A DNA stretch of 34,601 bases, from the NCBI GenBank assembly GCA_002269645.1, contig NIVC01004809.1, positions 1-34,601 on the forward strand. The letters run 5' to 3'. Position 1 is the stretch's first letter. Every line of letters begins with the position of its first letter. The notes under the pieces are model-generated. The model searched no databases. It saw only the letters and a program-made list of their open reading frames with translations, and was not told the origin of the DNA. The position numbers and the translations under genes are program-made. Source of the stretch: Macrostomum lignano (lineage: Eukaryota). Shown here in pieces: positions 2,456 through 26,203 of this stretch.

Positions 2456-2768
2456 CTGCTTTCTCGGTCTGCTGAAAGCGACTAAAACTGCTCAGACGTT
2501 GCGATTCCTCAAATTCGGTGACCCGACGGAAATAGCTGTGGTCGAGAAACTCGAAGTAGTATTCCTGCCTGGATTTCATCAAGTGAATTAGACCCAGATC
2601 GCTTAGCTTTTTCCATACTAGATGCTTGAGCTGGGCAAAGGTGACGTCTAACGATATCATCAAGTCCAGTAGATAGGGAAAGTCATCTTGCTGAATGAGC
2701 ACAGACAGCGGCTGCGGCTCAGAGTACACCTCCGAGTAAGCATAGTCTGAGTTTTCTTCATTCGCCAT
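2456..2768 (-). CDS. PIK3CA/B/D: Class I PI3K p110, coding exon 1 (adaptor/p85-binding domain)
   Basis: VTFAQLKHLVWKKLSDLGLIHLMKSRQEYYF...EESQRLSSF matches the ABD pattern of p110alpha (ATLITIKHELFKEA..LHQLL....YIF...DETRRL). ATG at 2768, donor GCAG|gtggga at 2456. Confidence 0.75.
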
Positions 2769-2786
2769 GAATGCGAACAGCAAGCA

Positions 2787-2798
2787 CTGAAACAAATA
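2787..2798 (-). promoter_or_regulatory. TTTCAG acceptor 18 nt upstream of the PI3K ATG
   Basis: ttatttgtttcag|TGCTTG...ATG; could be cis (see 2988-3283) or trans. Confidence 0.55.
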
Positions 2799-3511
2799 AG
2801 CAAGGTTTCGATTCTACTGCTCAAGCTTATATTTTGTAAATCCTAAGTCTCCTAACCAATAACGGTCTAATGTTAAATACGAGTACTATTTGACCGCTTC
2901 AAGCTCTAAATAGTCGAATTTTGATATTGGTTAGGTGGCGTTTTTGATACTCGAGTAATATACTTGAGTTATAAAAAATAAATATACCATTTCAACTTCG
3001 AAGAGGGTTGGATTAATCTTAACGCGCGTGAGGTGCAAGAAGATCAAGGATTTCTGAGATTCTCGGTACATTGATGAGCCATGTGGAAGAAAAGCCGACT
3101 GTGACCGTTAAACAATCAGTCCTCTGATTGACGGGACTTGATCAATTACATTGAAGGATGTTACGACGACTTAATGGAGATAGGAAAGAATAGTGGCATG
3201 TCAAGAGAATTCCTACACACGATCTGAATGGCGGCGCGGAGACATTCATCCCCCCCCCGGAGCGCGATGTATTTTTGTACACGCTGAAGTCAGTAAGTTA
3301 ATTTGTCATGGTTAGATATTGTTGCATGTTATATCATGTTAAAAAAACGGCAAATCAAGTTAGTTAAGGTGTGTCTTATCGGCAGTTTTCATCGCACAAG
3401 AAAGTAGGTAAAATTATCCCCATGTTGTTATTTTTTTACCGTCTAATCATTAAAATAAATCATTATAAAACAAAACAGATAAAAAGTAAAGTGTAAAACA
3501 GAGGTGGTGTA

Positions 3512-3517
3512 TTTATT
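3512..3517 (-). promoter_or_regulatory. Candidate AATAAA polyadenylation signal of TBC1D19
   Basis: TTTATT on plus strand at the end of a U-rich 3' region. Confidence 0.5.
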
Positions 3518-3782
3518 GAGATAACGAGTGTGACAGTTTCAAACGTTATGAGCAAGGTAAATGTAACATCTAAAAACTTTAAAAATTGCATGAACAATGC
3601 ATGTCTAACTAAAGAAGCACTATTCACAGCCTTAATTTAGAAAATTCCATTTTGCAGAATTAAATTTTGCCTGATTTCAACAAGTTTAAATTAAGTAAAA
3701 AATATTCAAAAAGACCTTTTATCGTAGTACACACAACAGTTGTTCGTAGAAGTTTTGATTGCAGCTTTTTTGAACAAAAAAA

Positions 3783-4066
3783 GTAATTGATTACACCTGT
3801 GCTAATGGTCAGATGTGCAAACGACAGCTCAGTTGCAGCTATTGCGCGGCGTATCTGAAAGCTGCGTACGACTGTTCAGTCCAAGGACTGGGGGTCGTCA
3901 CACTCTCAATTACCCCATCTAATGCCGGTATCTATTTTACAGCTGTGTGAACTAAAGCAATTTAGAGTGAAGTGTCTTGATCAAGAACACAAATTATTCT
4001 ATCTGAGTCGAGAATCGAATCCCAAACCTTTCAGCCATGAGTCTGGCGCTCTAACCAGTGGGCTAC
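3783..4066 (-). mobile_element. tRNA-derived CORE-like SINE, diverged copy, just downstream of the TBC1D19 stop
   Basis: Minus strand GTAGCCCACTGGTTAGAGCG (A-box), GGATTCGATTC (B-box-like); colinear with the other three copies. Confidence 0.8.
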
Positions 4067-4176
4067 AGTCCCCTCGTCTCAAGCTACAACCGCTAACTTT
4101 GAACAAAGTCAACAGAAAAACGCATAGGTGATCGATTTTTTCCAAAAGCTTGTAAAAGCTGTTATTAATCTATCTG

Positions 4177-5058
4177 TCAATCGTTATAACGCGCAAACAA
4201 GGTCAGCTGAAGTATAGGTCCAACGCTTAGCGTGGTTAAATCAGACAGGACAGCTTCAGCAGCTGAGAACGATTTCGTCTGAAGCAAATTATGCTTCCGA
4301 AAAGAGAACACACCAACAGCGAACAATGGCAGAATTGTGAGACTGTCGTAGGCGACAATTCTATCCCAGAGTAGCAGCACCTGTTCCGGCAGCAGTAAAC
4401 CGGAGAAGGCCAGCATCATCCAGCGGAAAGCGATGCGCAACGGTTGAATACCTTCGGAGCGTAGATGATGAAACAGTTCAGGCTCTTGAGTTTGCAGCAA
4501 CGATTCAAATAGGGCGCACAGGCCCAGTATGCTATCTGGTTCGGAGCTGATCACGTGCAACTTGTAGAAGTGGCGAGTGTACAGCTCGCGAAATACCAAG
4601 TAAAGCTCTTTGGGATCCGGATACAGAAAGCACAGCGGACACAGTAGCAGAGCGAATCCGTGGAACGGAATCACACCGGAGGGCGGATAGGCCACAGCGG
4701 CGGATTCGTCTCCAACCCGACCGTTCAAATACGCCTTCGGAGCCGTGGCGCAACAGCGTCGATAAACTCCTACAATAGCTGGATCCCGGCTAAACATCAG
4801 CAATATCATGTGCAGATAGTCTTCAAACACGAAGTACATATCATTGTTGGCGGCAGTCAGTTTGACATCTTTGAAAATAAGCGCGTCAACTAGCAAATCG
4901 TGGTCTAGCACGGCCTGTTTCAGGCCTTGGAGGTATTGTTCGGCGTGTCCGGTGACTGAGACGTCAAAAATTAACGACCAGAGGCGACCACGATAGGACA
5001 GAGGTACACCGCGTTTAGCCAACTCCTGGGCTAGGGGTGCACTGCCAGATTCGAGTAC
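4177..5058 (-). CDS. TBC1D19: TBC1 domain family member 19, exon 2 (Rab-GAP TBC domain, stop TGA 4177-4179)
   Basis: HDLLVDALIFKDVKLTAANNDMYFVFEDYL, YPPSGVIPFHGF and QPLRIAFRWM match human TBC1D19 closely. Acceptor ttttgcag|GTA at 5058; 882 nt. Confidence 0.95.
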   Translation of the reverse strand, partial: VLESGSAPLAQELAKRGVPLSYRGRLWSLIFDVSVTGHAEQYLQGLKQAVLDHDLLVDALIFKDVKLTAANNDMYFVFEDYLHMILLMFSRDPAIVGVYRRCCATAPKAYLNGRVGDESAAVAYPPSGVIPFHGFALLLCPLCFLYPDPKELYLVFRELYTRHFYKLHVISSEPDSILGLCALFESLLQTQEPELFHHLRSEGIQPLRIAFRWMMLAFSGLLLPEQVLLLWDRIVAYDSLTILPLFAVGVFSFRKHNLLQTKSFSAAEAVLSDLTTLSVGPILQLTLFARYND

Positions 5059-5420
5059 CTGCAAAATTGACAGGCAATTGATGTTGAGCAAAAAAGCCAG
5101 CTGTTGGTGTTGAGCGGGGGAAATTGACCTGCTGGTCCATGGCATTAACGTTGAAAAGACAGCTATGCGTCATAATACTAAAGTAGGCACTTTAATATAT
5201 TAACAATTGCAGTGAGAAGATTGCTAACTTATTAGCCCAACCTTGAAACTGCAGTCTTAGACGTTCCGTTTTTTGGTACAATTAGCGCTACTCTGTCTTT
5301 TCGAAAGTGCTGAATTTTCATGCTTTAAAATACAGCAATAATGCCAGTGTAGAAAAAGACATGTTTAGTAGCCAGGAAAGACTAGATAAACTACTGCTAC
5401 TTGAATAGTAACTAACGAAC

Positions 5421-6134
5421 CTTCACAGTGAGCTTTTCCCGTTCAACATCGCCGTCAGGCAGACACTCGTCATCTACGCCAGTCTGCGACAAGCTAATAG
5501 CCAAATCGTGATAGTCCAAACGTAGCTGGTCAATTGTTTTACAGCGCAACGGAGCGTGTATCAGGCCCCAGCGAGTGTCAGTCATCTCTGGCAGAGCGTT
5601 GGGACACCTGACTGCGACCAGCACTTCAAGGAAGTCCTTAGAAGCGTACACGGGTCTGATTGAAGAGACATCTTTCTCTATCACACTCAGCTCATTCCAT
5701 TTCGACACCAGCGCGTTGAAATCTTTCTCCGTTCGACGGCGAGCCAACGGCAAGCCAAGATCTGAGCACATAGTGTTGAGACTTTTGCAGATCCGTTTCT
5801 CCCAATTAGCTTGAGCTCTGCCAATATGAGCAGCCTCACCAACTGGTGTTAACGACTGCTGCTGCTGCTGAGACAGCGGCTGCTGCTGATACTGGCGCTT
5901 GGGCAATTTAGCTGATGCAGCAAAAAGCCAGTTGATAACGCTGCGACGACTTTCAGGCGTGTTTAACCGATCTAACAAAGCGTCTTTAGCGGCGGAGAAG
6001 CCGCCACTACTAGAGGCCAAATAGCTGCTGGATGCGCCCGAAGTCAAGTCTTTCTCCACAGCTTCCAATAGGCTAAGATGCAGATCAGAGTCGAAGAAAT
6101 TGCGGCAGAGTTCTTCTAAATCGGCTTCTTCCAT
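5421..6134 (-). CDS. TBC1D19: TBC1 domain family member 19, exon 1
   Basis: AQANWEKRICKSLNTMCSDLGLPLARRR and RPVYASKDFLEVL match TBC1D19. ATG at 6134 (MEEADL), donor AAG|gttcgt at 5421; 714 nt, phase 0. Confidence 0.93.
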
Positions 6135-6169: not shown

Positions 6170-6178
6170 CTGAAATTT
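6170..6178 (-). promoter_or_regulatory. TTTCAG acceptor 35 nt upstream of the TBC1D19 ATG (candidate trans-splice site)
   Basis: aaaatttcag|TGTACC...ATG; no obvious upstream exon. Confidence 0.5.
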
Positions 6179-6311: not shown

Positions 6312-6317
6312 TTTATT
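6312..6317 (-). promoter_or_regulatory. Candidate AATAAA polyadenylation signal of RRP12
   Basis: TTTATT on plus strand, about 140 nt before the next gene's acceptor. Confidence 0.5.
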
Positions 6318-6699: not shown

Positions 6700-7225
6700 T
6701 GGTGGCCCAGCAACTCATGATCTATCCGGGAGGCTGGCCCAGCAACTGAGGATCTGGGAGGCTGGCCCAGCAACTGAGGATCTGGGAGGCTGGCCCAGCA
6801 ACTGAGGATCTGGGAGGCTGGCCCAGCAACTGAGGATCTGGGAGGCTGGCCCAGCAACTGAGGATCTGGGAGGCTGGCCCAGCAACTGAGGATCTGGGAG
6901 GCTGGCCCAGCAACTGAGGATCTGGGAGGCTGGCCCAGCAACTGAGGATCTGGGAGGCTGGCCCAGCAACTGAGGATCTGGGAGGCTGGCCCAGCAACTG
7001 AGGATCTGGGAGGCTGGCCCAGCAACTGAGGATCTGGGAGGCTGGCCCAGCAACTGAGGATCTGAGAGGCTGGTCTAGCAACTGGGGATCTGAGAGGCTG
7101 GTCTAGCAACTGGGGATCTGAGAGGCTGGCCCAGCAACTGAGGATCTGGGAGGCTGGCCCAGCAACTGGGGATCTAGGAGGCTGGCCCAGCAACTGCGAG
7201 GATCTGTGAAGCTGGCCCAGCAACT
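6700..7225. repeat. 28-bp minisatellite (GGCTGGCCCAGCAACTGAGGATCTGGGA), about 18 copies, downstream of the RRP12 stop
   Basis: Read directly; the 28-aa three-frame cycling in the ORF track confirms a 28-nt unit. Confidence 0.97.
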
Positions 7226-7322
7226 GACACTCTAAATACAATCATTGACTTTCAATGCTTCTGAGACAATAGGCGATCAACGGTTCCCTTTCAGTCTCAA
7301 CAGTTTATAAAGCATCCACGAT

Positions 7323-8330
7323 TCATTTTCTCCTCCTAGCCTTGGCCTTGCGAATTCCTCCGCTGCCACCAGACTTGGAGCTCGATGCGGGCGCTCGGAC
7401 CAGATTCTTGTACTTGCCAAGACGGGCCAACTTGCCAGCAACATTTTTACGGTTCAACAGCCGCCTATCCAACGACAGGTAAGAATAGGGGTCAAGACCG
7501 TCCGACTGCGTCTTCTTCTTTTTAATTTTAGTAGCGCCAGAAGAAGATTTTGCTTGCTTCCGCAATTGCTGCGACTTGTTCAGCTTGCCTCCAGCTGGCT
7601 GTTTAGTCATGTCCCGATGAATGCCCCGCCCGCCCGGCCGGTACTTGGCTTGGACGCTGAATCGTCTTCATCATCGGATGAGGAGGACACGCCGCCGGAG
7701 ATGCTGTCTTCGTCATCATTGATAGCGGCAGTGCCGACCTGCTGTTTCATCTTTCGACTCTGTTTAGCTTTCTCACCGACATCCGCATCATCCGAGTCGC
7801 TCTCCTCAATGATCAAACGTCCATCAGACGACAATTTGAAATCGTCGCCCAGACGTCGCCGCTTGCTAGCAGCGTCAGCGGCGTCGGCGGATAGCGGCGG
7901 TCGGCTCCGATGGATCCTGGCGGCGGCTAGGGAGTCGCGCAAGTCCAGAATCTCGTCGTCGGCCTCCTCCAACCAGGCGGAATCTGCCAAGCGCTTGCTT
8001 CGAGACTTGTTGCCGCTTTTGGCGCTCTTGCTTCTTCTGCCGTCGCCGTCCTCCGAAGCGGAACTGTCAGACGACATGTTCAACAAGTCGTCGATGCCGC
8101 GTACAACTCGAGTAGCTTCGGAGCGTCCACCGATGCTGCTGGAGTCTTCACGGCCAGCGGCTGTTTGTGAGTCTTCGCCGCGTTTGCCGCGCTGTTTCAG
8201 GCGCTCCTTGTGCTCGGTTCGTTTGCGCACATTGGTCAGCTGTTTGTGATAGAAGGCCGGCAGGCCGGCGCGAAGCGTTTCGTAGGGAAAGCCGGCGAGC
8301 AGGTCGGTGAGGATGCGGCGGACAGTGGCT
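7323..8330 (-). CDS. RRP12: RRP12-like protein, exon 5 (C-terminus; one frameshift near 7650)
   Basis: YHKQLTNVRKR, KYRPGGRGIHRD (after the shift) and DPYSYLSLDRRLLNR match RRP12 C-terminal motifs. Acceptor ttccag|A at 8330; exon is one base short of frame. Confidence 0.85.
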
Positions 8331-8486
8331 CTGGAATTAGGTCAGGGAGCAAGCAGCTCAATAGTGAGTTTGAGCGTGTGTACGAATGCTTGCCTGCGTA
8401 CAGTATTGGGCTGCTTGTATGTGCTCAGGGGTCAAGCGGAATGAGCAGAATTTTTGGGGTCTGTGTGCACCCTGGGGCACTCCACT

Positions 8487-8640
8487 GACTCCCCGGAGCA
8501 GGCACACACTCACACAGGAGTGCACAGAGGCCCCAACTCTATTTATCGTTAGGCATGTACACTTCACTGTGCCTTGGGGGTTGGTCATCAAGGCCGTTAA
8601 TTGCACGAGCAGAGCCAAGCCGAGATTCCAATCTAGCCGC
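8487..8640 (+). repeat. Unclassified dispersed repeat family B, copy in RRP12 intron 4 (inverted partial copy at about 8365-8450)
   Basis: Highly similar to 25086-25266 (GCAGGCACACACTCACACAGG...GCCAAGCCGAGATTCCAAT). Strand is a relative label only. Confidence 0.88.
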
Positions 8641-8649
8641 AAATAAATG

Positions 8650-8955
8650 TGACTAATTGTAGTTAGAGCGTCGGGCTCATAACTGAAAAGTCGGGAGTTC
8701 GATTCTCGATCCCACTGGAACAATTTGTGTCCTTGAGCAAGACACTTAACTCTGCATTGCTTCAGTTCGCCCAGCTGTAAAATGGGTGCCAGCATTAGCT
8801 GGGGTAATTGAGGCTGTGTGTGTGGCGACCCCCCCCCCTCAGTCCTTGGATTGAACAGCCGTTTGCAGCCTTCAGATGCGCCGCGCAATAGCTGCGGCTG
8901 AGCTGTCGGTTGCACATCTGACCCAATTTGGGCAGGTGCAATCAATTATTATATT
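8650..8955 (+). mobile_element. tRNA-derived CORE-like SINE in RRP12 intron 4
   Basis: GTTAGAGCG...GAGTTCGATTC head; TGTGTCCTTGAGCAAGACACTTAAC...CAGCTGTAAAATGGG resembles the MIR CORE as remembered; AT-rich tail. Confidence 0.85.
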
Positions 8956-9091
8956 ATTACTATCATTGTTACTACACTTAAAATCGTTTCTGGGCCGCTG
9001 GGACTTCAGAGCACCGCACTAGGCCACTAGACTACGCCTCCATTGCGATTCAGTGTAGATCTGATAAAAAAATAAGAGCACTAGGACAAAC

Positions 9092-9750
9092 CTGAAAGCC
9101 GGTCGGAGGCTCACCGGCAAAGCCTCCAAGCACTGCGCCACCTGCTCCAGGGTGTAAGCGTGACCAAATCTACGAACCACCGACGCTAAACAACGCAGCG
9201 CCGCTTTCACCAACGTTCTCGGACTGTCCGAAGCGGACATTGTGTCTGACAGGCGTTGCAACAAAGACGCTAACAAAGACCGATTCATACAGTGACGCAG
9301 ATGACTCAGCAGGCCTGTCACCGAGTACAGAGCAGCCTGCAGTGTGGCATGCTCGTTGCCAGCCGCGGCAAACACCGCAGCCAGAAATCCAATAGCAGCA
9401 TTGCCACCAGCATCATCGTCTTCATCAACATCTGTTCGCACCTGTTGAGCATAGAATCGGAACACCTCCAACAGGAGACTGTCAGCGGCTTCTCTAGCCT
9501 GACTGTTCTGCTCTGTGCTACCCAGTACAGCCTCTGGCAGGGCCAGCTCTGCCAACTGGCGCCTCTGCTCGTCAGTCTCCAACCAGCTGGTTCCATTGGA
9601 CACGCACAGAGCCAGACAGCGTAGCCGGGACTTGCGACTACTTGGCAAGGCTTGGCCTCCAGACGAGGCCAGATCTAATAGCAGCTTGGCTAGACGATGA
9701 ATATTGGCTATATTGGACTCGGATGCGATGCCTGAGTTGCTGGGCAGCGA
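9092..9750 (-). CDS. RRP12: RRP12-like protein, exon 4
   Basis: SSRKSRLRCL resembles SPAKRPRLKCL; LPEAVLGSTEQNSQAREAA is RRP12-like. Acceptor ttccag|TCG at 9750, donor TTCAG|gtttgt at 9092, phase 2. Confidence 0.85.
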
Positions 9751-9830
9751 CTGGAATGTGTTGGTTGGGACAATACCTAATGTAAATTTATGGTATTGAC
9801 ATACTGCCCATTAACTTATTGTAATTTTAC

Positions 9831-10505
9831 CAAATATCTGACTCAATAGCTGACCTAATATCTGACTCAATATCTGACCCAATATCTGACTCAATATCTG
9901 ACCCAATATCTGACTCAATATCTGACCCAATATCTGACTCAATATCTGACCCAATATCTGACTCAATATCTGACCCAATATCTGACTCAATATCTGACTC
10001 AATATCTGACCCAATATCTGACTCAATATCTGACTCAATATCTGACCCAATATCTGACTCAATAGCTGACCCAATATCTGACTCAATAGCTGACTTAATA
10101 TCTGACTCAATAGCTGACCCAATATCTGACTTAATATCTGACTCAATATCTGACCCAATATCTGACTCAATAGCTGACCCAATATCTGACTCAATATCTG
10201 ACCCAATATCTGACTCAATAGCTGACCCAATATCTGACTCAATATCTGACTCAATATCTGACTCAATAGCTGACCCAATATCTGACTCAATAGCTGACCC
10301 AATATCTGACTCAATAGCTGACCCAATATCTGACTCAATAGCTGACTCAATAGCTGACTTAATATCTGACTCAATATCTGACCCAATATCTGACTCAATA
10401 TCTGACTCAATATCTGACTCAATATCTGACTCTATAGCTGACCGAATATCTGACTCAATAGCTGACCCAATATCTGACTAATTAGCTGACCCAATATCTG
10501 GTCAA
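9831..10505. repeat. 12-bp minisatellite (TGAC(C/T)CAATA(T/G)C) in RRP12 intron 3
   Basis: Read directly; gives the (SQIL/GQIL/GQLL)n ORF. Confidence 0.96.
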
Positions 10506-10530
10506 TATCAACAATTGATCCAGCAATCAC

Positions 10531-12245
10531 CTCATCCCTGCTTTTCCTAGCCGCAGTTAACAAGGCTTCAGCCAGTCTGTAGCCTTTCTTCTCCAAAGCA
10601 GCAGATACTTGCTCAACATCGCTGTCAGACTGATGGACATTGCACCATTGGTTACACAGGTCCACAGCAGGTCCAATGTCAGTCAGGCTAGGCGCCAAAG
10701 CAATAACCAAATCTGCAGCATCTCTACAAGCGGCTTCATCGCTACTAGTATCCTTCATCTTGTAGCCAGCCTCTTTAACTTTAGCAGCGGCTTTAGCAAA
10801 CCAACTGGATAAAAGATTAGATGGTGAGATTTTAGCATAGACTCGAATAGTCTCCAGAGCTGCTAAACGATGCGATCTTGTCGCTGAACTGTCCGAGTGC
10901 AAGGCAAACAGTCTCGGCACGTAGTTCTTAGCGTAGCCAGACATCAGACTGTACAGAGCAGAATTGTCAGCGGCGGCAGCTGACAGGCGTCTCAAAGCAG
11001 CCAACAGATGCAAGCGAATATCCGATCTGGACATGAGCAGCTCGCCAAGCTGCCTGGCCAACCCGGGCAGAGCTTCGGCAGCATCGGTTGGACCGTAGCA
11101 GAACGCCGGCAGAGACTGCCAGACCTGCAGTTCCAGCAGCCGGCAGTCGGAGATCCCGAAGCAGCGCCTGTTGGCAGCGCTTAGCCAGCGGCAGGAGATG
11201 ACGCGAGAAGGCCGCCAGCTGGGCGCCTCGCCGAATATGTCGGGGCAGCATCGGCAGCAGCCAAGATCGACGCCAGGTGTCGGACGGAGCGGCCGGATCC
11301 AAGCTGTCCAACGACACGGCGGCAAGGAAATCAGTCGGACCCAGAGTCTCCAGCGCAGCCGCCAGTGCCGACTCCAAGCAGGTGCACAGATCGGCGTCTT
11401 TATCGTCAGCCGTGTCGCGCAGGTTAGCTAAACTGGTCAGACTGGCAGTCAGATCCGATTGGCCTCGACAATCGTCACCATGACAACGAATAAATGCGGA
11501 CAATAGCCGACCAATATGCGGCCAAGACGGATAATACTGATAGGATGATAGTCCGCTGGTTAGAGTGGCCAAGACGGCAGAACGAATGCTAGCAAGAGCG
11601 GCAGGACGCCGGATTCGAGGGGCCAGCTCGATCAGCACGTGATGACAGGCATCACGACAAGCCCGTCGGGCAGCCTCGGCGAGACCCGACTGGCCAAGGC
11701 CGCGAAACGACACGGTGAACAGTTTGATGAGATGGGATTCGAATATCTGGCACTGTTCAGAGTCTGGTGCTGCTTTTCTTCAGCATCTTCGTCAGCTTCA
11801 ACAGGTGCCAAAGCGCCTAAGCCGGCCTTGGCGGTGTCCAACCAGATTCGAGTGCTCTCGGCATCCTCCAAGGCGGCGGGCATCGTACAGCGCTGACAAT
11901 CTGGCCGATCAGCTGGACAGGCAGCCGACTGTCCAGTCGACGACGCCAGAACAGCGACCGGATGGCGAGCATGGCTTCGGCGAAGGTTCTGGCATCGGCG
12001 GTGGGAGCTACGGCGAGAACTGCTTCGACTGTTGACTTGGCCTGGCGCTCTGTCTGGTGACTGGCGGCCACTCGAAGGAGCCGAAGCGAGAAAGCCGCGG
12101 AGCTGGCGGAGTTGAGCCGATCCAAAGCGAATGCGGTTACCAAGGCAACGGGGACGGAGGCTTCGGTAGAGGCGAGAGTTTCGGTCACGGCTTGCATAGC
12201 TGCTTTGCGAATGCGCGGTCGATCGGACTGGGTGAACTGCAGGAC
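10531..12245 (-). CDS. RRP12: RRP12-like protein, exon 3 (HEAT/NUC173 region; frameshifts near 11890, 11750 and 11150)
   Basis: FTQSDRPRIRKAA, RRSWLLPML, QVWQSLPAFCYGPTD..GLARQLG and KKGYRLAE match RRP12 in alternating frames. Acceptor cgcag|GTC at 12245; donor GAG|gtgatt at 10531 is less certain. Confidence 0.85.
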
Positions 12246-12254
12246 CTGCGTGGG

Positions 12255-12385
12255 AGTAGTTGTAGTATACTAGATGAAGTAGTAGTGTAATTAGTAGTAT
12301 TAGTAGTAGCAGTAGTATTAGTAGTATTAGTAGTAGTCGTAGAAGTAGTAGTAGTGGTAGTATTAGTATTAGTAGTAGTAAAACC
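12255..12385. repeat. (TAG)n-type degenerate microsatellite in RRP12 intron 2
   Basis: agtagtagtattagtagtag tract read directly. Confidence 0.9.
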
Positions 12386-12442
12386 CCAGATAAATTGTAC
12401 AGAAAATAGCACTACTAATAGTAGTTTAAAACAGCTACTCAC

Positions 12443-12746
12443 CGCCTGCAGCACCTGTCGGGTGGCCGCCGCGTGCCAGGCAGTCTTGGGCAGGGCGGCC
12501 AGAGCGCTGCCAAGGCACAGCAGCAAACTGCGAGGCAGTCCCGCGCCCGATGAAGCAGCAGACTGATCAGCGGTGTCGGATGCTGCGGTCTCAGGCGAGT
12601 GCAGCAGCTGCAAGCAGGCCTGCGTGAGCGGAGCGAATGCCGGCGCCAGAGTGGCCGGGTCCATCCGCTTGGTGAGCACGCTGAGTAAGTGAGCTGCGGC
12701 CGGACGAATGTCCGAATCAACGGACACTAGAGCAGTCAGTAGGGGC
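12443..12746 (-). CDS. RRP12: RRP12-like protein, exon 2 (one extra base in the G-run 12742-12745)
   Basis: AAAHLLSVLTKRMDP resembles AVAYLLNLVLKRVP; SLLLCLGSAL. Acceptor cccag|G at 12746, donor GCG|gtgagt at 12443; 304 nt = 3n+1. Confidence 0.82.
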
Positions 12747-12819
12747 CTGGGTGTAGGGCAGATATAACATTTTATAGTTGGCTTTTTTTATGCATTACAT
12801 CTTTTTCGATACATATCGG

Positions 12820-15598: not shown

Positions 15599-15974
15599 TT
15601 AATTTTGACATTTTTTGTGTATAACTGTTGTAACACACTGTAAATATGTTTTCATTGCTACTTGTAGTAGATAAATCGGAAAAATATTAATTTAAATAAA
15701 CTTTTGAAAACAAGTAATTGTAACTATTAAACTCGTTGCAACTAGAAAAAAACTGCAGTTTCTGATAGTTAACCAATTTTTCCAAAATTGCAGAATAAAA
15801 TAAAGGCAATCTGTAATGGATAATATATAAGGTATGAAATTGTAATTATATTGTAGCCTACTTAAATATTTCGACAATATAGATAGCGTATACACTGGGT
15901 ATTAGGTAGCAGTTGAAACAAAAAATGTATTAAAATCAAGACAAGAGATGCTAGCAGTCTCTAGGGTGGATTCA

Positions 15975-17803
<1,829 letters not shown>

Positions 17804-17904
17804 TCACGCATTAACGCTCCCACACACTTTTTTACACTATATAATTCATTTACTAGACGTCTATAGTAGTTCAGTAACGCATAACCCATCCTACATAAAT
17901 TCTC

Positions 17905-18685
17905 ATTGGCAAACACCCAACCCCCTATAACAACCCATCCTCGATAACACCCTATCCTTCATAACACCCATTCCCCCATAAACATCCCATCCCCTACAAA
18001 AACCGATAAGACCCCAACCCCATAACACCCCATCCCCATAACACCCCATCCGCCATAACACCCCATTCCCATAACACCCCATCCCCCATAACACCCCATC
18101 CGCCATAACATCCCATCCCCATACCACCGATCCACCATAACACCCCATCCCCCATAACACCTATCCCCCATAACACCAACAACAACAACAGCAACAGAGT
18201 ACGCTGCCGGATCACAAAAGCAACGTCAGATGGCACGCTTCGAAGCCTGGGCGCGAACAAAGGCCGCACCGCCGGCAGAGTCCGGGGCGCCGGCGTCAGC
18301 CCACATCCCATAAAACCCCATCCTCCATACCACCGATCCGACATAACACCCCATCCCCATAACACCCCATCCGCCATAACACCCCATCCCCATCCGCCAT
18401 AACACATCATCCCCATAACACCCCATCCCCCATAACACCCCATCCCCCCATACCACCGATCCACCATAACACCCCATACCCCATAACACCCATCCCCCAT
18501 AACACCCCATCCCCATAAACACCCCATCCCCCATAACACCCCATCCCCATAAACACCCCATCCCCATAACACCCCATCCTCCATACCATCGATCCGCCAT
18601 AACACCCCATCCCAATAACACCATGTCCCCATAACACCCCATCCCCATAACACCCCATCCCAATAAACACCCCATCCCACAACCC
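17905..18685. repeat. 16-17-bp C-rich minisatellite (CATAACACCCCATCCCC) in PKN intron 3, interrupted by a unique island at about 18180-18305
   Basis: Read directly; G-rich on the transcribed strand. Confidence 0.93.
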
Positions 18686-18699
18686 CCAGCGGGACTCAC

Positions 18700-19208
18700 A
18701 GCGGGCTGCCTGCTAGCAGTCCTTGGCGGTGGGGTGGGCACCAGCTCGTGCAGATTGGTCCTACTCTTAGACGCAATAGTAATGTCATTCCGATCGCCCA
18801 AGCGCTTCTGAAACGGCCACCAAGTCATCCAATTGACATTCTTCGGCATCTCAGCGGCCATCCGTTTGCCCTTCCGCCGGCTGAGCAGCCTCTGCCGCTG
18901 CCGTTGCAACGGCTGCTTCTTTCGGAAGATTTGCGGATTGCTGAAAATCAACTCGGCAAAGAAGAAGCCGTCGGGTTCCAGATAGAATGGCACAGCGTGC
19001 TTCTCGCAGTCCAGATAATCCTCCAGCTTCAAGAACCTCACAGCGGCCAAGCCGCGACTATCTCGCCAGTGAATTTGAATCTCTAACTCGCGAGCAGTTT
19101 CCAGCGGTATGCTGATCCGATTGTTCCAGCACTCGTGCGACATCGGGCGCCACTCGGATGACCATTCGAATTTGTTGTTGTCAATCCGTAGTATGCATTT
19201 GACCTCCT
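18700..19208 (-). CDS. PKN: Protein kinase N, exon 3 (C2-like domain)
   Basis: EVKCILRIDNN...LETARELEIQIHWRDSRGLAAVRFLKLEDYLD matches the PKN C2 region. Acceptor ttcgcag|AG at 19208, donor GCT|gtgagt at 18700. Confidence 0.92.
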
Positions 19209-19339
19209 CTGCGAATGGTGACGGGTTTTAGGGGGAGGTGGTTTGTCACATAAATCCTATACTAAAATGAGTACACACTGACAGATATGATAACAAAATT
19301 GAGCTCGTAAAATACGAGTATTTCACATGTATTTTCTTC

Positions 19340-19940
19340 ATTACTGATCCCATTGTCTTTAATACTGATCCCATTGTCTCTATCACTGATCCCATCGTTT
19401 CCATCACTGATCCCATTGTCTCCATCTCTGATCCCATTGTCTCCATCACTGATCCCATTATTTCCATCACTGATCCCATTGTCTCCATCACTGATCCCAT
19501 TGTCTTTATTACTGATTCCATTGTCTCTATCACTGATCCCATCGTTTCCATCACTGATCCCATTGTCTTTATCACTGATCCCATTGTCTCTATCACTGAT
19601 CCCATCGTTTCCATCACTGATCCCATTGTCTTTATTACTGATCCCATTGTCTCTATCACTGATCCCATCGTTTCCATCACTGATCCCATTGTCTCCATCT
19701 CTGATCCCATTGTCTAATACTGATCCCATTGTCTCCATCACTGATCCCATCGTTTCCATCACTGATCACATTGTCTCCATCACTGATCCCATTGTCTCCA
19801 TCACTGATCCCATTGTCTTTATCACTGATCCCATTGTCTTCATCTCTGATCCCATTGTCTTTATTACTGATCCCATTGTCTTCATCTCTGATCCCATTTC
19901 TTAATTACTGATTCCATTGTCTCCATCACTGATCCCATTG
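19340..19940. repeat. 21-bp minisatellite (CACTGATCCCATTGTCTCCAT) in PKN intron 2
   Basis: Read directly; 7-aa periodic ORFs (MGSVMET). Confidence 0.95.
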
Positions 19941-20779
19941 CCAATGTCATTGCTTTCACTGTTCACTTTACTAAACACATCCTATCACTTTCCACACTAC
20001 ACAGAGTATGCTACACAATCTGACTCAACACAGTCAAACATGTAAAATGGTTTAAAAACATTCAATAAAAAACTTTCTTGAAAAATAATTCGCAACATGA
20101 TAAACATAAAAGCGGAACCAGTTAGCCTGCTGGTTGGCAATAAAATGTCAAATTCTGTCAATCTGTTTCAAAACTATAATAGAAGATGCATTTGTTAGTA
20201 ATATTTAAGTATCTTGCTACCCTAATGCTCAGTACTAGCCGCGATCAAATCCGCTTAACTTAGGCTAGGGAGATCCCATATATGCAGATGTATAAACTGG
20301 GGATTCGAGTTCGGGACCATGCCAGTTCAAATCGATTTATCGATTGCATATAAACTCGCCATCCGGTAAAATGTTAACAAATCATCATATGTATTGTGGT
20401 ACACTAAAAATTCATTGCATGCCTGTATATGGTTCTGTTCCTTTTTGAATCAATCAATTATTACCATAGACATTGCTATGCGATAGGCGCCGCATGAGAG
20501 CGGGCGCGCAACCGCTTATTAACATGTCTGGCACAGTGGGCGGCTGTGGCGCCGCCCTTTCTGGGCTGATTGCGAATCCTGAATCGATTGATTGATTGAT
20601 AATTAATAGATTAATTAATAGTCTCTGCACATATCATAGTCAGAGGTAATAGGTTTAAAACAAGTAATGATACCGATATTCAATAATTTTGGATAGAACA
20701 TGCCTGCTTCCTGTTTATATCGCTTTCTAAACTGTTTCCCGGCAATATACCTGTCTACCTGTTAACCTGGAAATCTTAA

Positions 20780-21342
20780 CTATCTACCCATCAATCTCAA
20801 CTGGCTGCCCGTCAATCTCAACTGGCTGCCCATAAATCTCAACTGGCTGCCCGTCAATCTCAACTGGCTACCCGTCAATCTCAACTATCTACCCGTCACT
20901 CTCAACTATCGACCCATCAATCTTAACTATCTACCCGTCAATCTCAATCTCAATCACTATCCACCCGTCAATCTCAACTATCTACCCATCAATCTCAACT
21001 ATCTACCCGTCAATCTCAGCTATCTACCCATCAATCTCAACTATCTACCCGTCAATCTCAACGGTCAATCTCAATCTCAATCACTATTCACCCGTCAATC
21101 TCAACTATCTACTCATCAATCTCAACTATCTACCCGTCAATCTCAACGGTCAATCTCAATCTCAATCACTATCCACCCGTCAATCTCAACTATCTACCCA
21201 TCAATCTCAACTATCTACCCATCAATCTCAACTATCTGCCTGTCAATCTCAACTATCTACCCGTCAATCTCAACGGTCAATCTCAATCTCAATCACTATC
21301 TACCCATCAATCTCAACTATCTACCCGTCAATCTCAACTGTC
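20780..21342. repeat. 21-bp minisatellite (ATCTCAACTATCTACCCGTCA) with higher-order variants, PKN intron 2
   Basis: Read directly. Confidence 0.93.
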
Positions 21343-21485
21343 TGTCCTGAAATATTATAATAAACTATACACAAAGCTACTAAATATCGTTAGAAGGAAA
21401 GAATGTTAGAAAATTAGAAGACAAAAAACCAGGTTTGGCAATAGAAACTAAATCAATCAGCATTATTGCCCTATTAACAGCTCAC

Positions 21486-21933
21486 TAGTTAGTTCGTCTT
21501 CATGCAACCGCATGCTGTAGCTCCTAGTGGGCATGATACCCTTTGATCCTTTGCGCAGAGATTGATAATCACCACTGGCTGCCACAGGCAGGGGGCTGGC
21601 GCTACCGCCGAAGTTGCCGTTGCCGGAGGCCCCCAAGCCGCCATCAGACGGCCGAGGCCTCAGCACGGCCGGGTCTTCAATCAGCTCTTTACAACCGAGC
21701 ACTTTAATCTCGAGTTTGCCACTAACAGGCGCCGGAGCCTTTACCAGAGTCTCCAATGCTGCGTACTCCTTAGCTAGCAGCAGCTGTCTGTCCCGGCGAA
21801 CCCAATCGAGATTGTCGTCCATCTCCGCTAGCAGACGGCCGAGAGAGTACTCGAATAGAGCCACTTTGCACTGGGCTTCGGCTAGATTCTGCTGTACGCT
21901 GGCTGCGCGAGCCTTGTCCGGAGCTCGGACCGT
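21486..21933 (-). CDS. PKN: Protein kinase N, exon 2 (end of HR1c, start of C2)
   Basis: TVRAPDKARAASVQQNLAEAQCKVALFEYSLGRLL; APVSGKLEIKVLGCKELIE. Acceptor cgcag|ACG at 21933, phase-1 donor ACTA|gtgagc at 21486. Confidence 0.92.
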
Positions 21934-22109
21934 CTGCGGTATGGTTCAAGATTGTGTGCGACACAGGTGAGTAAAATGGCATTTGTTTTAATTCAATGAC
22001 AGAATCAATCCGGAAAAACTAGACAAGGTCTAGTAGGATTTGCTAGACTATTTTAGAATACCAATAGCAATAGTGATATACCAATAGTGAGCACGAAAAG
22101 TACTTTAAC

Positions 22110-22450
22110 CACCTCTTTCACGCATTCTCTGTTTCTCTATTTACTTATCGATTATCTTCCCGACTTTCTACTCTCTACCCTTCTCCTCTACTCTCTCCTC
22201 TCTATTCTCTTTTCACTATCTCTCTCCTCTACTCTCCTTTCTACTCCTCTCATCTACTCTCTCCTCTCTACATCTTTCCTATACTCTCTCATCTCGATCC
22301 CTTCTTTTCTATTCACTCACCTGTACTCTTCTTCTCTACTATATCTTACATCTACGCCTCTCATGTACTCTCCTCTCATTGCTACTCCTATCTAATCTCT
22401 CATTTCTACCCTTTCTCTACTCTCTCCTGTCTACCCCTCTCCTCTACTTT
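22110..22450. repeat. CT-rich low-complexity tract (CTACTCTCTCCT-like) in PKN intron 1
   Basis: Read directly. Confidence 0.85.
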
Positions 22451-22469
22451 TGGCTGTTGGCACGTTTTT

Positions 22470-22579
22470 CAGGCACACACTCATACACACGCTCACACAG
22501 AGTGCACAGCAAGCCCTGACTAATCGAATATTTAATCCTCAGGCATGTACACTATCTGTGCCTTGGGGGTTCGGCCCTC
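22470..22579 (+). repeat. Family B, diverged partial copy in PKN intron 1
   Basis: CAGGCACACACTC...AGGCATGTACACT...GTGCCTTGGGGGTT shared. Confidence 0.78.
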
Positions 22580-22661
22580 ATTGGTGTGAATTTCCGTGCA
22601 CACAAGCCCCAAAACGAATGTGACCGCGCAGCGCAAGAGTGTAAAAATCTCTCTCACACAC

Positions 22662-23456
22662 CTGCAGAGCTCTCGCCGCTTTCATTGCTCCATCGCACAG
22701 TCGCCATTCAACTTTCAATTTGTGCTTCAACTCTTCGATTCGTTGCTGCTCAGCTGACAGCTCCGTTGGCGCGAGAATCACCCCGACGCCGGTACCGTCT
22801 GAAGAGGAAGCGGCAGCAGCAGCCGCGGCCGCCGCTGCAGCGCTAGCAGCCGCCGTGTCCTCCTGCTGCAAGCGCAACAGGCTGTTCTTTAAAAAAGCAA
22901 TCTTATCGCGACTCTCGGCAAGCTCCTGTCTGGCCCGTTCCAGCAGAGCGGCTGAAGCGCCAGACACGGCCGCGCCTTTGCCGCACAGATTCTCAATCAG
23001 CCTCTCGGCTCCAGACTTCACTTTCATCTCAATTGCCAGCTGCTTTTGAAGGTCAGTAATTCGCGGATCGACGCCACCAGAACCGCCAAATCCGCCGTCA
23101 TCTGATGCTCCACCGCCGCCACCGTCGGCTTCGTTAGCAGCTGCCGATGTGACACCGCGGATGTGCTGCAGCACCAGCATTTCGTTGCTGGTTTCCTGGA
23201 TCTGGTCGTGAATCTCGTGAAGGTCTCTCTCGTAGTCGGCAATCTGTTTATTAACATCTTTTGCTTTCTTTTTTTCCATAGCGTTGCGCAAATTCTCGGC
23301 GCCAGCTTTCAACTTGCGCACCTTGAATAGTTCATCTTTTAGAGATTCTTTCTGCGCTTCGAGACGGCGCATCACTTGGTCAAACTGCTCAGGATCGGAG
23401 CCAGGCCGCAAGCTGTACTTTGTGGCCACGCTAGTGTAGGAATCCAAAGTGTCCAT
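22662..23456 (-). CDS. PKN: Protein kinase N, exon 1 (HR1a/HR1b Rho-binding repeats)
   Basis: KVRKLKAGAENLR, RITDLQKQLAIEMKVKSGAERLI and RIEELKHKLKVEWRLCDGA are HR1 repeats. Donor CAG|gtgtgt at 22662; 795 nt. Confidence 0.92.
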
Positions 23457-23671
23457 TGCTGCTGCTGCGTGACCTCTAAGTGAGAAAATCTGACTAATCT
23501 ATAGCAGGCCAATACTTGGTTGCCCGAATTGGGTTTGACAATTTCAGAAATGTTTATAACGCAGATTTCCTGTTAACAATGGTTATTACTTCTAGTTGTA
23601 CAGTTGGTTCGTTGTATGATTAACTGAGTAAAATACCTCTCGAAAACAATTAAATTACTTTAAACGGCTAA

Positions 23672-23940
23672 TAATAATTGATTGCACCTGCCCTAATGAG
23701 CAGATGTGCAACCGACAGCTCAGCCGCAGCTATTGCGCGGCGCATCTGAAGGCTGCGTACGGCTGTTCAGTCCAAGGACTGGGGGGGGGGGGTCGCCACA
23801 CACCCTCAATTACCCAGCTAATGCTGGCACCCATTTTACAGCTGGGTGAACTGAAGCAATGCAGAGTTAATTGTCTTGCTCAATGACACAAATTGTTCCA
23901 ATGGAATCGGGAATCGAACCCCAGACCACAACTAGGCTAC
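23672..23940 (-). mobile_element. tRNA-derived CORE-like SINE with a short head deletion, upstream of PKN
   Basis: Near-identical body to the 8650 and 25325 copies; B-box GGTTCGATTCC. Confidence 0.85.
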
Positions 23941-25085
23941 AGCCCCATTTAAACCGTCGCAATATAATATTTAAATAGTTTTGACTCAAAAACTCCTTAA
24001 ATTAATGCCACAAAGTCTTAATAAAAAACGCGTCTATATTTATACACAAAAACTTGACATACTGACCGTTCCTAATTGTACATAAGAAACATCTAAACAA
24101 TAACTATATGTGAGCTAAAAATAAAGAAAGAAAATAAATAGTTAAGTAAAATAAAAAAGAATTGTTTATAATGTGAAATGACAGCATTTACTGTAACGAT
24201 ATACAGGCCGGAATACACTACTGGATGAAATTCAGGTTTAAAAAAACATAACTTTTTATTCAAAAAGCAATTTAAAATGGGTTTAACAAAAACTGGGTTA
24301 AAATTGATTATTGAGTTAATGTATATGCAAATCTATATAACTATTGATAAACATTAAACGATTAATTTTTAATATATCATATCTCATGCCACGGTACCAT
24401 GCTAAAAGTACACCAGATTTTGTACATAAAGCTTTTTGTGTCTTTCAATTTCTTATAGCAATCCAATAATAGAAAATTGTAAAAATTTCTGACAAAAAAC
24501 GTTTTTTTTCAAAAGAACACCATTTATGCAGCTTATAATTATTGAAAATTAACAAGCGCTGGTTCTGAATTACAATAACAATTTAATACTTATATATAAT
24601 ATGTGTGTATACTGTACATCAATATGTACGTAACTAATTATTAAATTTAATATAACAAAAGGACACACAAAAGCACAATTTTGATAATTAAATATTCAGT
24701 GCAATCATCACAAAAATTATATACCGATATATATAAAATACTAGAATGATGCATGCAATAAACAATTTATAAACGTGTTTAATAACGTTAATAAATAGGC
24801 TTTTCTTGAACTATATACATGCAAATATTAGTCAATACTAATAATATTAACTAGGATAACTATAAACAATTGAGTTAGCATAAAATTGTTAAGCTTAATG
24901 TATAATCAGCATTTGAAAAGCTTGAAAATCTATGAAATTGTATAATATATTTTTGATGGCTTGATTTAACTTTAATAGTACATTAGCAAGATGAGGAAGG
25001 CATTTTCGCTGAACTTTCAGCAAGCTTATAAACCTTATTAATATTTATTATTTTCCAAATTTTAACTGGCAATGCCCATTCCGCC

Positions 25086-25266
25086 GACTCCCCTGAGCAG
25101 GCACACAAGCGCACAGATACGTACGCAGGCACACACTCACACAGGAGTGTACAGCGGCCCTAACTTTATTTATCGTTAGGCATGTACACTTCACTGTGCC
25201 TTGGGGGTTGGCCCTCAAGGCCGTTAATTGCATGAGCAGAGCCAAGCCGAGATTCCAATTTAGCCC
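25086..25266 (+). repeat. Unclassified dispersed repeat family B
   Basis: Aligns by eye with 8487-8640 with few mismatches. Confidence 0.88.
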
Positions 25267-25324
25267 CAAATTTAGCCTAACCATTATGGCAGCTGGACAA
25301 CTGGGCTACGGACCCCCAATTATT

Positions 25325-25605
25325 ATAATTTATCACACCTGCCATAATGGCCAGATTCGCAACCGACAGCTCAGCCACAGCTATTGCGCGGCGCATCTGA
25401 AGGCTGCGTACGGCTGTTCAGTCCAAGGTCGCCACACACCCTCAATTACCCCAGCTAATGCTGGCACCCATTTTACAGCTGGGTGAACTGAAGCAATGTA
25501 GAGTTGAGTGTCTTGCTCAAGGACACAAATTGTTCCTAAGTGGAATCGGGAATCGAACCCCAGACCTTCAAGTCCTGAGCCCGACTCTATAACCCACTAG
25601 GCTAC
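25325..25605 (-). mobile_element. tRNA-derived CORE-like SINE downstream of the NCKAP1 stop
   Basis: Minus strand GTAGCCTAGTGG (A-box) and GGTTCGATTCC (B-box), then the CORE-like segment. Confidence 0.87.
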
Positions 25606-25768
25606 AACCTCATTTTACCATTAACAATAGCTAATACATTCAACAAAAAGAAAAAACAGGTCTTCAAATACGAGATTAAAATTGTTAAACAATCAATCAA
25701 AAGGATAGATTTTACTCAAGATTAATACGCTCGTAATCCCAATGAATCGCTGATTCAACAGCAGATCC

Positions 25769-26203
25769 CTAAGACTGATGATGCGACGCCACTGGCCGTC
25801 TGGCGGAACCAACAGCATTGTAGGCCTGGCGAATCAGTGCATAGGGGAAGCACATCTCCAGCAGACTGGCAGTCAGGTAGGGGCACTGCTTCACTATCAG
25901 GTCCAAGATGATGAACACTGAGGGCAGATTCCTGCCAGTGAGCTCGTCCTGGCTAGCCCTGAGCAGTGAGCTGCTGCACAGAGCTAGAAATTCTTTCCAA
26001 CGATCGCCCAATTCAACGCTCAGCTGCTGCGGAGTGCACAGAGTTAGCAGGGCTGGCAGGACTGAGTTCAAGGCTCCCGCAATGGTGTGGGTATTGTTGT
26101 AGTGCGCCTCAACATCGTGGCCATAGACTGTGTTGTCAAGGGCGGCCAGGCGGGGCAGAGACACGGACAGGAAGACCAGCATGTGGCACACCAGCATGTA
26201 CTC
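25769..26203 (-). CDS. NCKAP1: Nck-associated protein 1 (Hem-2/NAP1), last exon
   Basis: EFLALCSSSLL and CFPYALIRQAYNAV match NCKAP1 KEFLALASSSLL and CFPYVLLRNAYHAV. Acceptor cgcag|GAG at 26203, stop TAG at 25769. Confidence 0.95.
   Translation of the reverse strand, partial: EYMLVCHMLVFLSVSLPRLAALDNTVYGHDVEAHYNNTHTIAGALNSVLPALLTLCTPQQLSVELGDRWKEFLALCSSSLLRASQDELTGRNLPSVFIILDLIVKQCPYLTASLLEMCFPYALIRQAYNAVGSARRPVASHHQS

Follow-up and report, generated by a model that had tools for sequence, protein, structure and literature searches.

The locus analysed here raises the question of whether five neighbouring genes of Macrostomum lignano form a single operon resolved by spliced-leader (SL) trans-splicing and, if so, whether a common function of their products underlies the arrangement. 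The window, meaning the whole stretch of 34,601 nucleotides, is contig NIVC01004809.1 of the Mlig_3_7 assembly. A sequence-only reading had proposed a five-gene trans-spliced operon, enriched in small-GTPase signalling genes, composed of NCKAP1, PKN, RRP12, TBC1D19 and PI3K p110. The five identities proved correct by Pfam and exact protein matches, and all five genes are encoded on the minus strand (Table 1). They are immediate neighbours pointing the same way: the GenBank calls on the window contig and three paralogous contigs comprise these genes only, all on one strand, and the inspected plus-strand ORFs of the window fall within minisatellites and SINEs. Rfam and tRNA scans of the window gave no matches. 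Co-orientation of five genes is expected by chance with P ~0.06.

Locus tags were recovered by rebuilding the exact annotated proteins from GT-AG enumeration and, for PI3K, by a representative search, which placed its paralogues under BOX15_Mlig000947g5 and g7. About 1010 codons of the 3' part of NCKAP1 lie in the window, the 5' end being beyond it. The RRP12 coding sequence is interrupted in the window contig by unpolished homopolymer indels, so that GenBank annotates only 628 aa of it (11034..7607, BOX15_Mlig000947g13), while the paralogous copies encode 1382 aa. The window contig is an unpolished duplicate with false frameshifts.

Table 1. Coordinates of genes, splice acceptors, AATAAA hexamers and repeats in the window, in the order of transcription
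Feature	Position	Strand	Details
NCKAP1 (Hem/Nap1)	25769..34579	-	Pfam Nckap1; exact reconstruction = PAA46548; tblastn with 1139-aa paralogue; stop 25771-25769; GenBank annotation in the window is a 454-aa fragment only (28619..25769, BOX15_Mlig015109g1)
NCKAP1-PKN gap	23457..25768	-	36% GC; longest gap, repeat- and AT-rich
Two tRNA-like SINE copies in NCKAP1-PKN gap	25606-25321, 23927-23671		
Another repeat in NCKAP1-PKN gap	25271-25125		
Probable true PKN trans-splice acceptor, TTTC[A/T]G	23545..23550	-	Junction 23545/23544; exon start 23544
cacttag, earlier proposed as PKN acceptor	23476..23482	-	Exon start 23475, 19 nt before ATG; outside YTNCAG motif
PKN CDS	15446..23456	-	ATG 23456, stop 15448-15446; PAA46547, 1054 aa, BOX15_Mlig030858g3; five exons: 23456-22662, 21933-21486, 19208-18700, 17734-16466, 15589-15446
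AATAAA, possible distal PKN poly(A) signal	13784..13789	-	27 nt upstream of RRP12 acceptor; conserved in all copies
Putative RRP12 trans-splice acceptor, tttttacAG	13758..13766	-	Exon start 13757, 78 nt before ATG
RRP12 CDS	7323..13679	-	ATG 13679, stop 7325-7323
28-bp minisatellite, ~18 copies	6724..7227	-	Between RRP12 stop and RRP12 AATAAA, so within the inferred 3' UTR
AATAAA, likely RRP12 poly(A) signal	6312..6317	-	Conserved in all four copies
Putative TBC1D19 trans-splice acceptor, tttcAG	6170..6175	-	Exon start 6169, 35 nt before ATG
TBC1D19 CDS	4177..6134	-	ATG 6134, stop 4179-4177; PAA46545, 531 aa, BOX15_Mlig000947g8; two exons: 6134-5421, 5058-4177
tRNA-like SINE copy	3784..4067	-	Between TBC1D19 stop and AATAAA at 3517; in all four locus copies
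AATAAA, only one in TBC1D19-PI3K gap	3512..3517	-	Conserved; 726 nt before PI3K acceptor
cttcAG in PI3K spacer	3286-3284	-	Exon start 3283; conserved
Putative PI3K trans-splice acceptor, tttcAG	2787..2792	-	Exon start 2786, 18 nt before ATG
PI3K p110 CDS, 5' part	1..2768	-	ATG 2768; exons ~2768-2454, 2182-1718, 351-70; runs off window

The stop-to-ATG gaps, from NCKAP1 to PI3K, measure 2312, 1766, 1188 and 1408 nt, in agreement with the earlier estimates of about 2.3, 1.8, 1.2 and 1.4 kb. Such lengths are not unusually short for this genome, in which 72,846 genes of 7.5 kb mean length occupy 764 Mb (Table 3 of PMC5730564), leaving by our own arithmetic a mean intergenic distance of ~3 kb. Published M. 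lignano operons are delimited instead by a repeat-adjusted distance of <1 kb between the upstream transcript end and the downstream trans-splice site (Ustyantsev & Berezikov 2021, PMC8629364). With transcript ends estimated from AATAAA hexamers only, this distance would be ~120 nt from RRP12 to TBC1D19 and ~700 nt from TBC1D19 to PI3K. The RRP12 hexamer, which had been placed about 140 nt from the TBC1D19 acceptor, lies 143 nt before it (6317-6312), and both this and the 726-nt placement before the PI3K acceptor are under the 1-kb limit. From PKN to RRP12 the estimate ranges from 27 to 1537 nt depending on the hexamer chosen (others lie at 15299, 15051 and 14999), and from NCKAP1 to PKN it would be ~450-1360 nt after subtracting one SINE. 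The latter gap still measures ~1.6 kb from stop to ATG without its in-window repeats. The copy number of the 28-bp minisatellite differs among the paralogous loci.

The acceptor strings from which trans-splicing had been proposed are all present, with exon starts at 23475, 13757, 6169, 2786 and 3283. In M. lignano, trans-splice acceptors have the motif [T/C]TNCAG, and intercistronic distances have their mode at ~100 bp (PMC8629364). On this strand YTNCAG occurs 2.2 times per kb, and the 100 nt upstream of a random position contain it with P = 0.19; for three of four ATGs to have it at that range, the chance probability is P ~0.02. In the window the motif is found within 80 nt of the ATG in three of the four downstream genes.

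Evidence on the use of these acceptors was obtained from the paralogous copies of the locus. M. lignano has a single SL of 35 nt, ending in ...TTGCATG (Wudarski et al. 2017, PMC5730564; Ustyantsev & Berezikov 2021, PMC8629364), and polishing of the assembly with Pilon made use of RNA-seq data (PMC5730564), which accounts for SL-tail bases being written into the assembly at junctions. At RRP12, the ACAG of the window reads CATG in three other copies, producing ttttttCATG, the SL tail. At TBC1D19, the window tttcAG is tttATG in NIVC01003482.1 and tttAAG in NIVC01001133.1, and at PI3K it is tttcTG in two other copies. For PKN, the site at 23545..23550 is tttcTG in the window and NIVC01003483.1, and NIVC01001133.1 has tttcAG; the T at position 23546 of the window is probably a polishing artefact. 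The changes sit exactly at these four junctions, and 7/7 changed positions go to the SL base, which by direction alone has a probability of (1/3)^7, ~5e-4 by our own arithmetic. Over 16 kb, the window and a near-identical copy (L002) differ by homopolymer indels, one SNP and the ACAG/CATG block, and by nothing else. Nine cis acceptors and nine donors were without change in every copy covered by the alignments. AG/TG variants across the whole locus number 35 copy-wise, at ~25 distinct sites. They are genuinely enriched at the 5' junctions, although this count taken by itself is evidence of no more than moderate strength; the argument rests on the direction toward the SL and on the comparison of the window with L002. 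Adjacent double substitutions are not rare in the copy alignment, and their rarity was not relied on as evidence.

Real acceptor-loss mutations in one homeologue were considered and rejected, as the copy groups affected differ between genes and every change is toward SL bases; this origin is also disfavoured by the presence of one such change between copies otherwise 99.8% identical. The C-to-A change at position -3 of the TBC1D19 junction, found in one copy without a change at -2, is a poor fit to a simple read-depth footprint model.

Taken from the assembly footprints and the annotation, SL trans-splicing is supported at the RRP12, TBC1D19 and PI3K acceptors, as had been proposed, and a PKN junction carries a footprint as well. 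The site previously assigned to PKN, cacttag, is not supported: it is identical in all copies, free of any SL footprint, and the footprint lies instead at the TTTCAG 88 nt upstream of the ATG. The PI3K coding sequences in GenBank are annotated as 5'-partial, their first base lying no more than 15 nt from the ATG, which fits an mRNA whose genome-encoded part starts at the acceptor. The AUG at the end of the SL would share its reading frame with the PI3K ATG located 18 nt downstream.

The annotation of transcriptional units (TUs) indicates which genes are joined. A locus-tag prefix names a cd-hit cluster of assembled TUs, and therefore unrelated genes share a prefix only if one TU spans them. 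On NIVC01003482.1, the Mlig000947 genes g2, g3, g4 and g5 are the C-terminal part of PKN, RRP12, TBC1D19 and PI3K, respectively, so that one TU spans PKN(3')-RRP12-TBC1D19-PI3K; on NIVC01003840.1, g9, g10 and g11 are a PKN part, RRP12 and TBC1D19, again within one TU. The TU is split in the window contig, where PKN is Mlig030858 and the RRP12 and TBC1D19 numbers are non-consecutive, and on NIVC01001133.1, where TBC1D19 is Mlig030299. Copies of NCKAP1, on the four contigs where it is named, carry the prefixes Mlig015109, Mlig007036 and Mlig033510, never Mlig000947 or Mlig030858. Merging of TUs by StringTie/TACO can also come from read-through or abutting UTRs. A search of Logan through the clusters of all five proteins returned no M. 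lignano transcript contigs, the best match to TBC1D19 being an uninformative one of 59% identity, and the gene IDs of the locus were not found in the supplements of the published papers checked.

We consider it likely that the locus holds a polycistronic, SL-resolved unit of the kind conventional in M. lignano, made up of RRP12, TBC1D19 and PI3K p110 and probably headed by PKN. One primary transcript would cross the spacers, which are AT-rich and carry repeats; the upstream mRNAs would be cleaved and polyadenylated, presumably at the AATAAA hexamers, and each downstream mRNA would receive the SL at a YTNCAG acceptor 18-88 nt upstream of its start codon. The shared TU would then reflect one promoter. 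The same arrangement could be produced if each gene had its own promoter in the upstream spacer, the SL only trimming a short outron and the shared TU name being an assembly merging of read-through or abutting UTRs. Around 60% of SL trans-spliced M. lignano genes are indeed outside operons (PMC8629364), the TUs are split between genes in two of the four copies, the window included, and spacers of 1.2-2.3 kb are roomy enough for promoters, given that no more than 2 kb of upstream sequence sufficed for reporters according to the M. lignano authors. Yet transcript assembly yielded a TU covering four unrelated genes on at least one contig and one covering three genes on another, the conserved RRP12 hexamer leaves only ~120 nt before the TBC1D19 acceptor, and the RRP12-to-TBC1D19 and TBC1D19-to-PI3K distances, as estimated from the hexamers, would fall within the published limit, all of which renders individual promoters rather improbable. 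Still less can be granted to the view that the acceptors are cis acceptors joined to unannotated 5'-UTR exons without any SL, which we hold to be extremely unlikely: motif alone cannot separate cis from trans splicing, and the PI3K spacer does contain a further acceptor, the conserved cttcAG, but the bases overwritten at four genes all spell (C)ATG, with which the published SL terminates. Cis exons that differ from one of the four genes to the next would not all end alike, and the cis acceptors within the same genes lack such a change.

Whether the unit extends to NCKAP1 is a separate matter. The NCKAP1, PKN, TBC1D19 and PI3K p110 families each have some link to small GTPases. The proposal of a single operon of all five genes, under selection for joint expression of small-GTPase (Rac/Rho/Ras/Rab) signalling components, draws on this link in four of the five products, on the co-orientation of all five genes and on PKN, which seems to be trans-spliced and so need not be the first gene. 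Against it stand the NCKAP1 prefixes and the NCKAP1-PKN gap, the longest of the four, rich in repeats and AT, and still ~1.6 kb with its in-window repeats removed; moreover, the GTPase category is broad and was chosen post hoc, RRP12 falls outside it, published operons are enriched simply for conserved genes, and among the ~10,000 operon genes of the genome a coincidence of this sort is to be expected once. We regard this extension as very unlikely, and as quite implausible its stronger form, in which selection kept the five genes together in one promoter-driven unit so that proliferating neoblasts have matched doses of Rac/Rho/Ras/Rab signalling and ribosome biogenesis; if true, the block would be a functionally themed metazoan operon. 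The part of the five-gene proposal that is supported is the PKN(3')-RRP12-TBC1D19-PI3K segment, with its footprints and shared prefix Mlig000947. The SL-resolved unit likely comprises three or four genes, a unit of five is not supported, NCKAP1 most likely stands apart as a gene of its own upstream, and the link to small GTPases is probably a coincidence.

The finding is real in part but ordinary, because SL trans-splicing is already known to be common in M. lignano. The locus is an ordinary trans-spliced cluster of this species, this particular unit being so far without individual description, and it is biologically minor, one more case beside some ten thousand catalogued operon genes, with four of its five genes already grouped by the public annotation. 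In practice, promoters for RRP12, TBC1D19 or PI3K transgenes would be sought upstream of PKN and not in the spacer directly before each gene. Better supported than the themed five-gene operon is an assembly artefact: trans-splice acceptors of the reference were apparently corrupted when it was polished with RNA-seq reads, and Pilon may have overwritten acceptor AGs with SL-tail bases throughout Mlig_3_7. Only 44% of annotated M. lignano trans-splice sites showed the YTNCAG motif, a figure that assembly-wide scars could explain. If widespread, they would be a source of bias at thousands of 5' ends, for motif statistics as well as for splice-site models and variant calls, and they could serve as a read-free marker of trans-splice sites.

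Compared with the SL operons described in M. lignano (PMC5730564, PMC8629364), the locus is alike in the 35-nt SL ending in ATG, the YTNCAG acceptors, the co-oriented conserved genes and the repeat-inflated spacers, and its genes are already under one TU prefix in the public annotation; nothing essential differs. About 15% of the genes of the species (~10,000) have been assigned to operons, which number in the thousands, 75% with two genes and 18% with three (PMC8629364). The locus would lie in the upper quarter of these sizes with three genes and in the upper 7% with four, and its TBC1D19-to-PI3K distance (~700 nt) is well above the 100-bp mode. The operons of Caenorhabditis elegans are similar in their polycistronic precursor, their mixed gene functions and the position of the upstream poly(A) signal ~100-140 nt before the trans-splice site, as from RRP12 to TBC1D19 here. 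They differ in that C. elegans has a dedicated SL2 for downstream genes, whereas M. lignano has one SL only, so that SL type cannot tell operon from non-operon genes, and in the spacers, which at this locus reach ten times the length and contain SINEs and minisatellites. In Schistosoma mansoni and other flatworms the SL likewise ends in AUG, and at this locus that AUG would open the reading frame of PI3K; for S. mansoni, PMC8629364 gives 'a few genes in operons', against thousands in M. lignano.

Alignment of the four spacers between the paralogous copies of the locus, of which the assembly (Mlig_3_7) contains four, located the acceptor AGs at exactly the differing positions, every change being toward the tail of the spliced leader (SL), ...CATG; in RNA-seq-polished copies the sites appear overwritten by the SL bases CATG, ATG or NTG (see the table). 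As controls in the same genes, nine cis acceptors and nine donors are identical in every copy covered by the alignments. M. lignano has a single SL of 35 nt, CGGTCTCTTACTGCGAAGACTCAATTTATTGCATG (PMC8629364), and Pilon polishing of the assembly used RNA-seq plus genomic reads, according to its Methods (PMC5730564). Overwriting of the acceptor would result from end-to-end alignment of reads whose first bases are the final few of the SL. Chance differences between copies would instead demand seven substitutions, each to the SL base (~5e-4 for direction alone), and all seven on four predefined junctions. We infer that the copy differences are a fossil trace of SL-bearing mRNAs joined at 13757, 6169, 2786 and 23544, and the window T at 23546 is probably a polishing artefact.

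The cleanest control for the putative footprint is the comparison with L002, the near-identical copy on NIVC01003840.1 (99.8% identity over window 1-16134). Along these 16 kb the two differ by homopolymer indels, one SNP (11429) and the ACAG/CATG block at 13761-13758, and by nothing else. This part of the window is apparently an unpolished duplicate keeping the raw AG, and its polished twin has the SL tail. Homopolymer indels at 11891, 11877, 11872, 11768, 11167, 11144 and 7649 frameshift RRP12 in the window, and therefore GenBank annotates 628 aa, not 1382 aa; RRP12 is no true pseudogene here.

Other sites resemble scars. At 24762-24752 (junction before 24751), the AT-rich NCKAP1-PKN spacer contains 11 nt that match the 3' end of the SL exactly (TTTATTGCATG), with the same sequence in three copies. 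Chance could account for the match (roughly 1%, an estimate), or it could be a longer SL scar at an unannotated trans-spliced exon. At 14758-14756, in the PKN-RRP12 spacer, the window has caaCAG/TAATC and three other copies caaCTG, either an ordinary shared SNP or an SL footprint at an unannotated acceptor.

Coordinates of genes, acceptors and repeats in the window (slash, splice junction)
Feature	Position	Strand	Details
NCKAP1 fragment	28619..25769	minus	GenBank gene call
PKN	23456..15446	minus	GenBank gene call, 1054 aa
RRP12 fragment	11034..7607	minus	GenBank gene call
TBC1D19	6134-5421 + 5058-4177	minus	two exons; 531 aa, exact match to PAA46545 on NIVC01004809.1, the contig of the window
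PI3K p110	start 2768	minus	continues past window end
PKN acceptor	23546		88 nt upstream of ATG; NIVC01001133.1 tttCAG/AAATT; window and NIVC01003483.1 tttCTG
RRP12 acceptor	13761-13758		window ttttttACAG/CTAAAAC; three copies ttttttCATG/CTAAAAC
TBC1D19 acceptor	6172-6171		window and L002 tttCAG/TGTACC; NIVC01003482.1 tttATG; NIVC01001133.1 tttAAG
PI3K acceptor	2788		window and L002 tttCAG/TGCTTG; two copies tttCTG
SINE-like repeat	25606-25321, 23927-23671, 4067-3784	gene strand	~260-290 bp
SINE-like repeat	8662-8953	opposite	in RRP12 intron
Second repeat	25271-25125, 8498-8644		common to both sites
Intron minisatellites	446-1679, 9833-10509, 15976-16445, 17912-18681, 19331-19940, 20772-21343, 26264-26794, 27249-27878, 28793-29087, 31212-31929, 32207-32811, 33336-33967		0.3-1.2 kb, periods 16-36 bp

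The sequence-only reading had proposed a trans-spliced operon of five genes, NCKAP1, PKN, RRP12, TBC1D19 and PI3K p110, with an acceptor before each downstream ATG. All its coordinates proved correct on rechecking, and its acceptors for RRP12, TBC1D19 and PI3K are real and show SL footprints in paralogous copies. YTNCAG, the trans-splice motif published for M. lignano (PMC8629364), lies 18, 35 and 78 nt upstream of three of the four downstream ATGs (P ~0.02, given a chance of 0.19 within 100 nt). The 'cacttag' assigned to PKN does not fit this motif, and the PKN acceptor probably lies 69 nt farther upstream.

The extent of the unit was approached through locus tags, obtained by exact reconstruction of annotated proteins followed by protein cluster look-up. 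In the published annotation, assembled transcriptional units (TUs) were grouped by cd-hit at 95% identity with one prefix per cluster; SL and poly(A) signals then served to split the units into genes (PMC5730564). On NIVC01003482.1, Mlig000947 covers PKN (g2, C-terminal 656 aa), RRP12 (g3), TBC1D19 (g4) and PI3K (g5), and on NIVC01003840.1 a part of PKN (g9), RRP12 (g10), TBC1D19 (g11) and PI3K (g7). The window has Mlig000947g13 (RRP12), Mlig000947g8 (TBC1D19), Mlig030858g3 (PKN) and Mlig015109g1 (NCKAP1), and NIVC01001133.1 has Mlig000947g1, Mlig030299g1, Mlig030858g1 and Mlig007036g1 for RRP12, TBC1D19, PKN and NCKAP1. A prefix can be common to unrelated genes only where one assembled TU covers them all, so at least one copy had PKN(3')-RRP12-TBC1D19-PI3K joined in the published RNA-seq assembly. 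By these tags NCKAP1 is joined to the Mlig000947 TU in no copy. Membership of NCKAP1 in the proposed operon is unsupported, and the best-supported unit is PKN-RRP12-TBC1D19-PI3K, with the membership of PKN queried. TU breakage tends to occur in repeat-rich spacers, according to the annotation authors (PMC8629364).

For assignment to an operon in the published analysis, genes had to be co-oriented, with the downstream one trans-spliced and the distance, adjusted for repeats, <1 kb; the modal distance was ~100 bp (PMC8629364). Co-orientation of the five genes has P ~0.06, and the intergenic gaps (2312, 1766, 1188 and 1408 nt, of which repeats within the window fill 690, 0, 525 and 284 nt) are unexceptional in size for the genome. 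A conserved AATAAA lies 27 nt upstream of the RRP12 acceptor, with three more near the PKN stop; another conserved one (6317-6312) is 143 nt upstream of the TBC1D19 acceptor, and the sole one in the TBC1D19-PI3K gap (3517-3512) is 726 nt upstream of the PI3K acceptor. If these hexamers are used, RRP12-TBC1D19-PI3K would fall within the published distance. The head of the SINE-like repeat is tRNA-like (GGTTCGATTCCCG box B), and ARAGORN and Rfam gave no call for the repeat in the window. Minisatellites occupy many introns of the genes, vary in copy number between paralogous loci and cause long spurious ORFs on both strands.

GenBank calls on the contig are all on the minus strand, and a TBC1D19 exon search returned M. 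lignano proteins at 96-99% identity. The first ~130 codons of NCKAP1 lie outside the window, at the end opposite PI3K, and its GenBank annotation is limited to the last 454 aa. NCKAP1 exons at 34579-34103, near the contig end, have 45-77% identity to the paralogous protein, which suggests sequence errors there.

At 2786-2766, the AUG closing the SL would share the reading frame of the PI3K ATG, put seven codons (AUG UGC UUG CUG UUC GCA UUC) in front of it, and could serve as initiator of PI3K; PI3K CDSs of paralogous contigs are 5'-partial in GenBank, starting 3-15 nt upstream of the ATG. The predicted outcome is a short upstream ORF for RRP12 and PKN, and an overlapping one for TBC1D19.

The putative SL scars from RNA-seq polishing are the sole unexpected item, a methodological by-product which a literature search found described in no paper; if they are general, Mlig_3_7 would have many of its annotated trans-splice acceptors corrupted. 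In M. lignano 30-39% of genes are trans-spliced, and 10,458 (~15%) belong to operons of 2-9 genes (PMC8629364); multi-gene precursors are almost 7% of assembled transcripts (PMC5730564). The small-GTPase theme of the sequence-only reading is probably coincidental, its category being broad and post hoc and the published enrichment of operon genes being for conservation only (PMC8629364). Within this well-described class, the gene cluster of the window is unremarkable.
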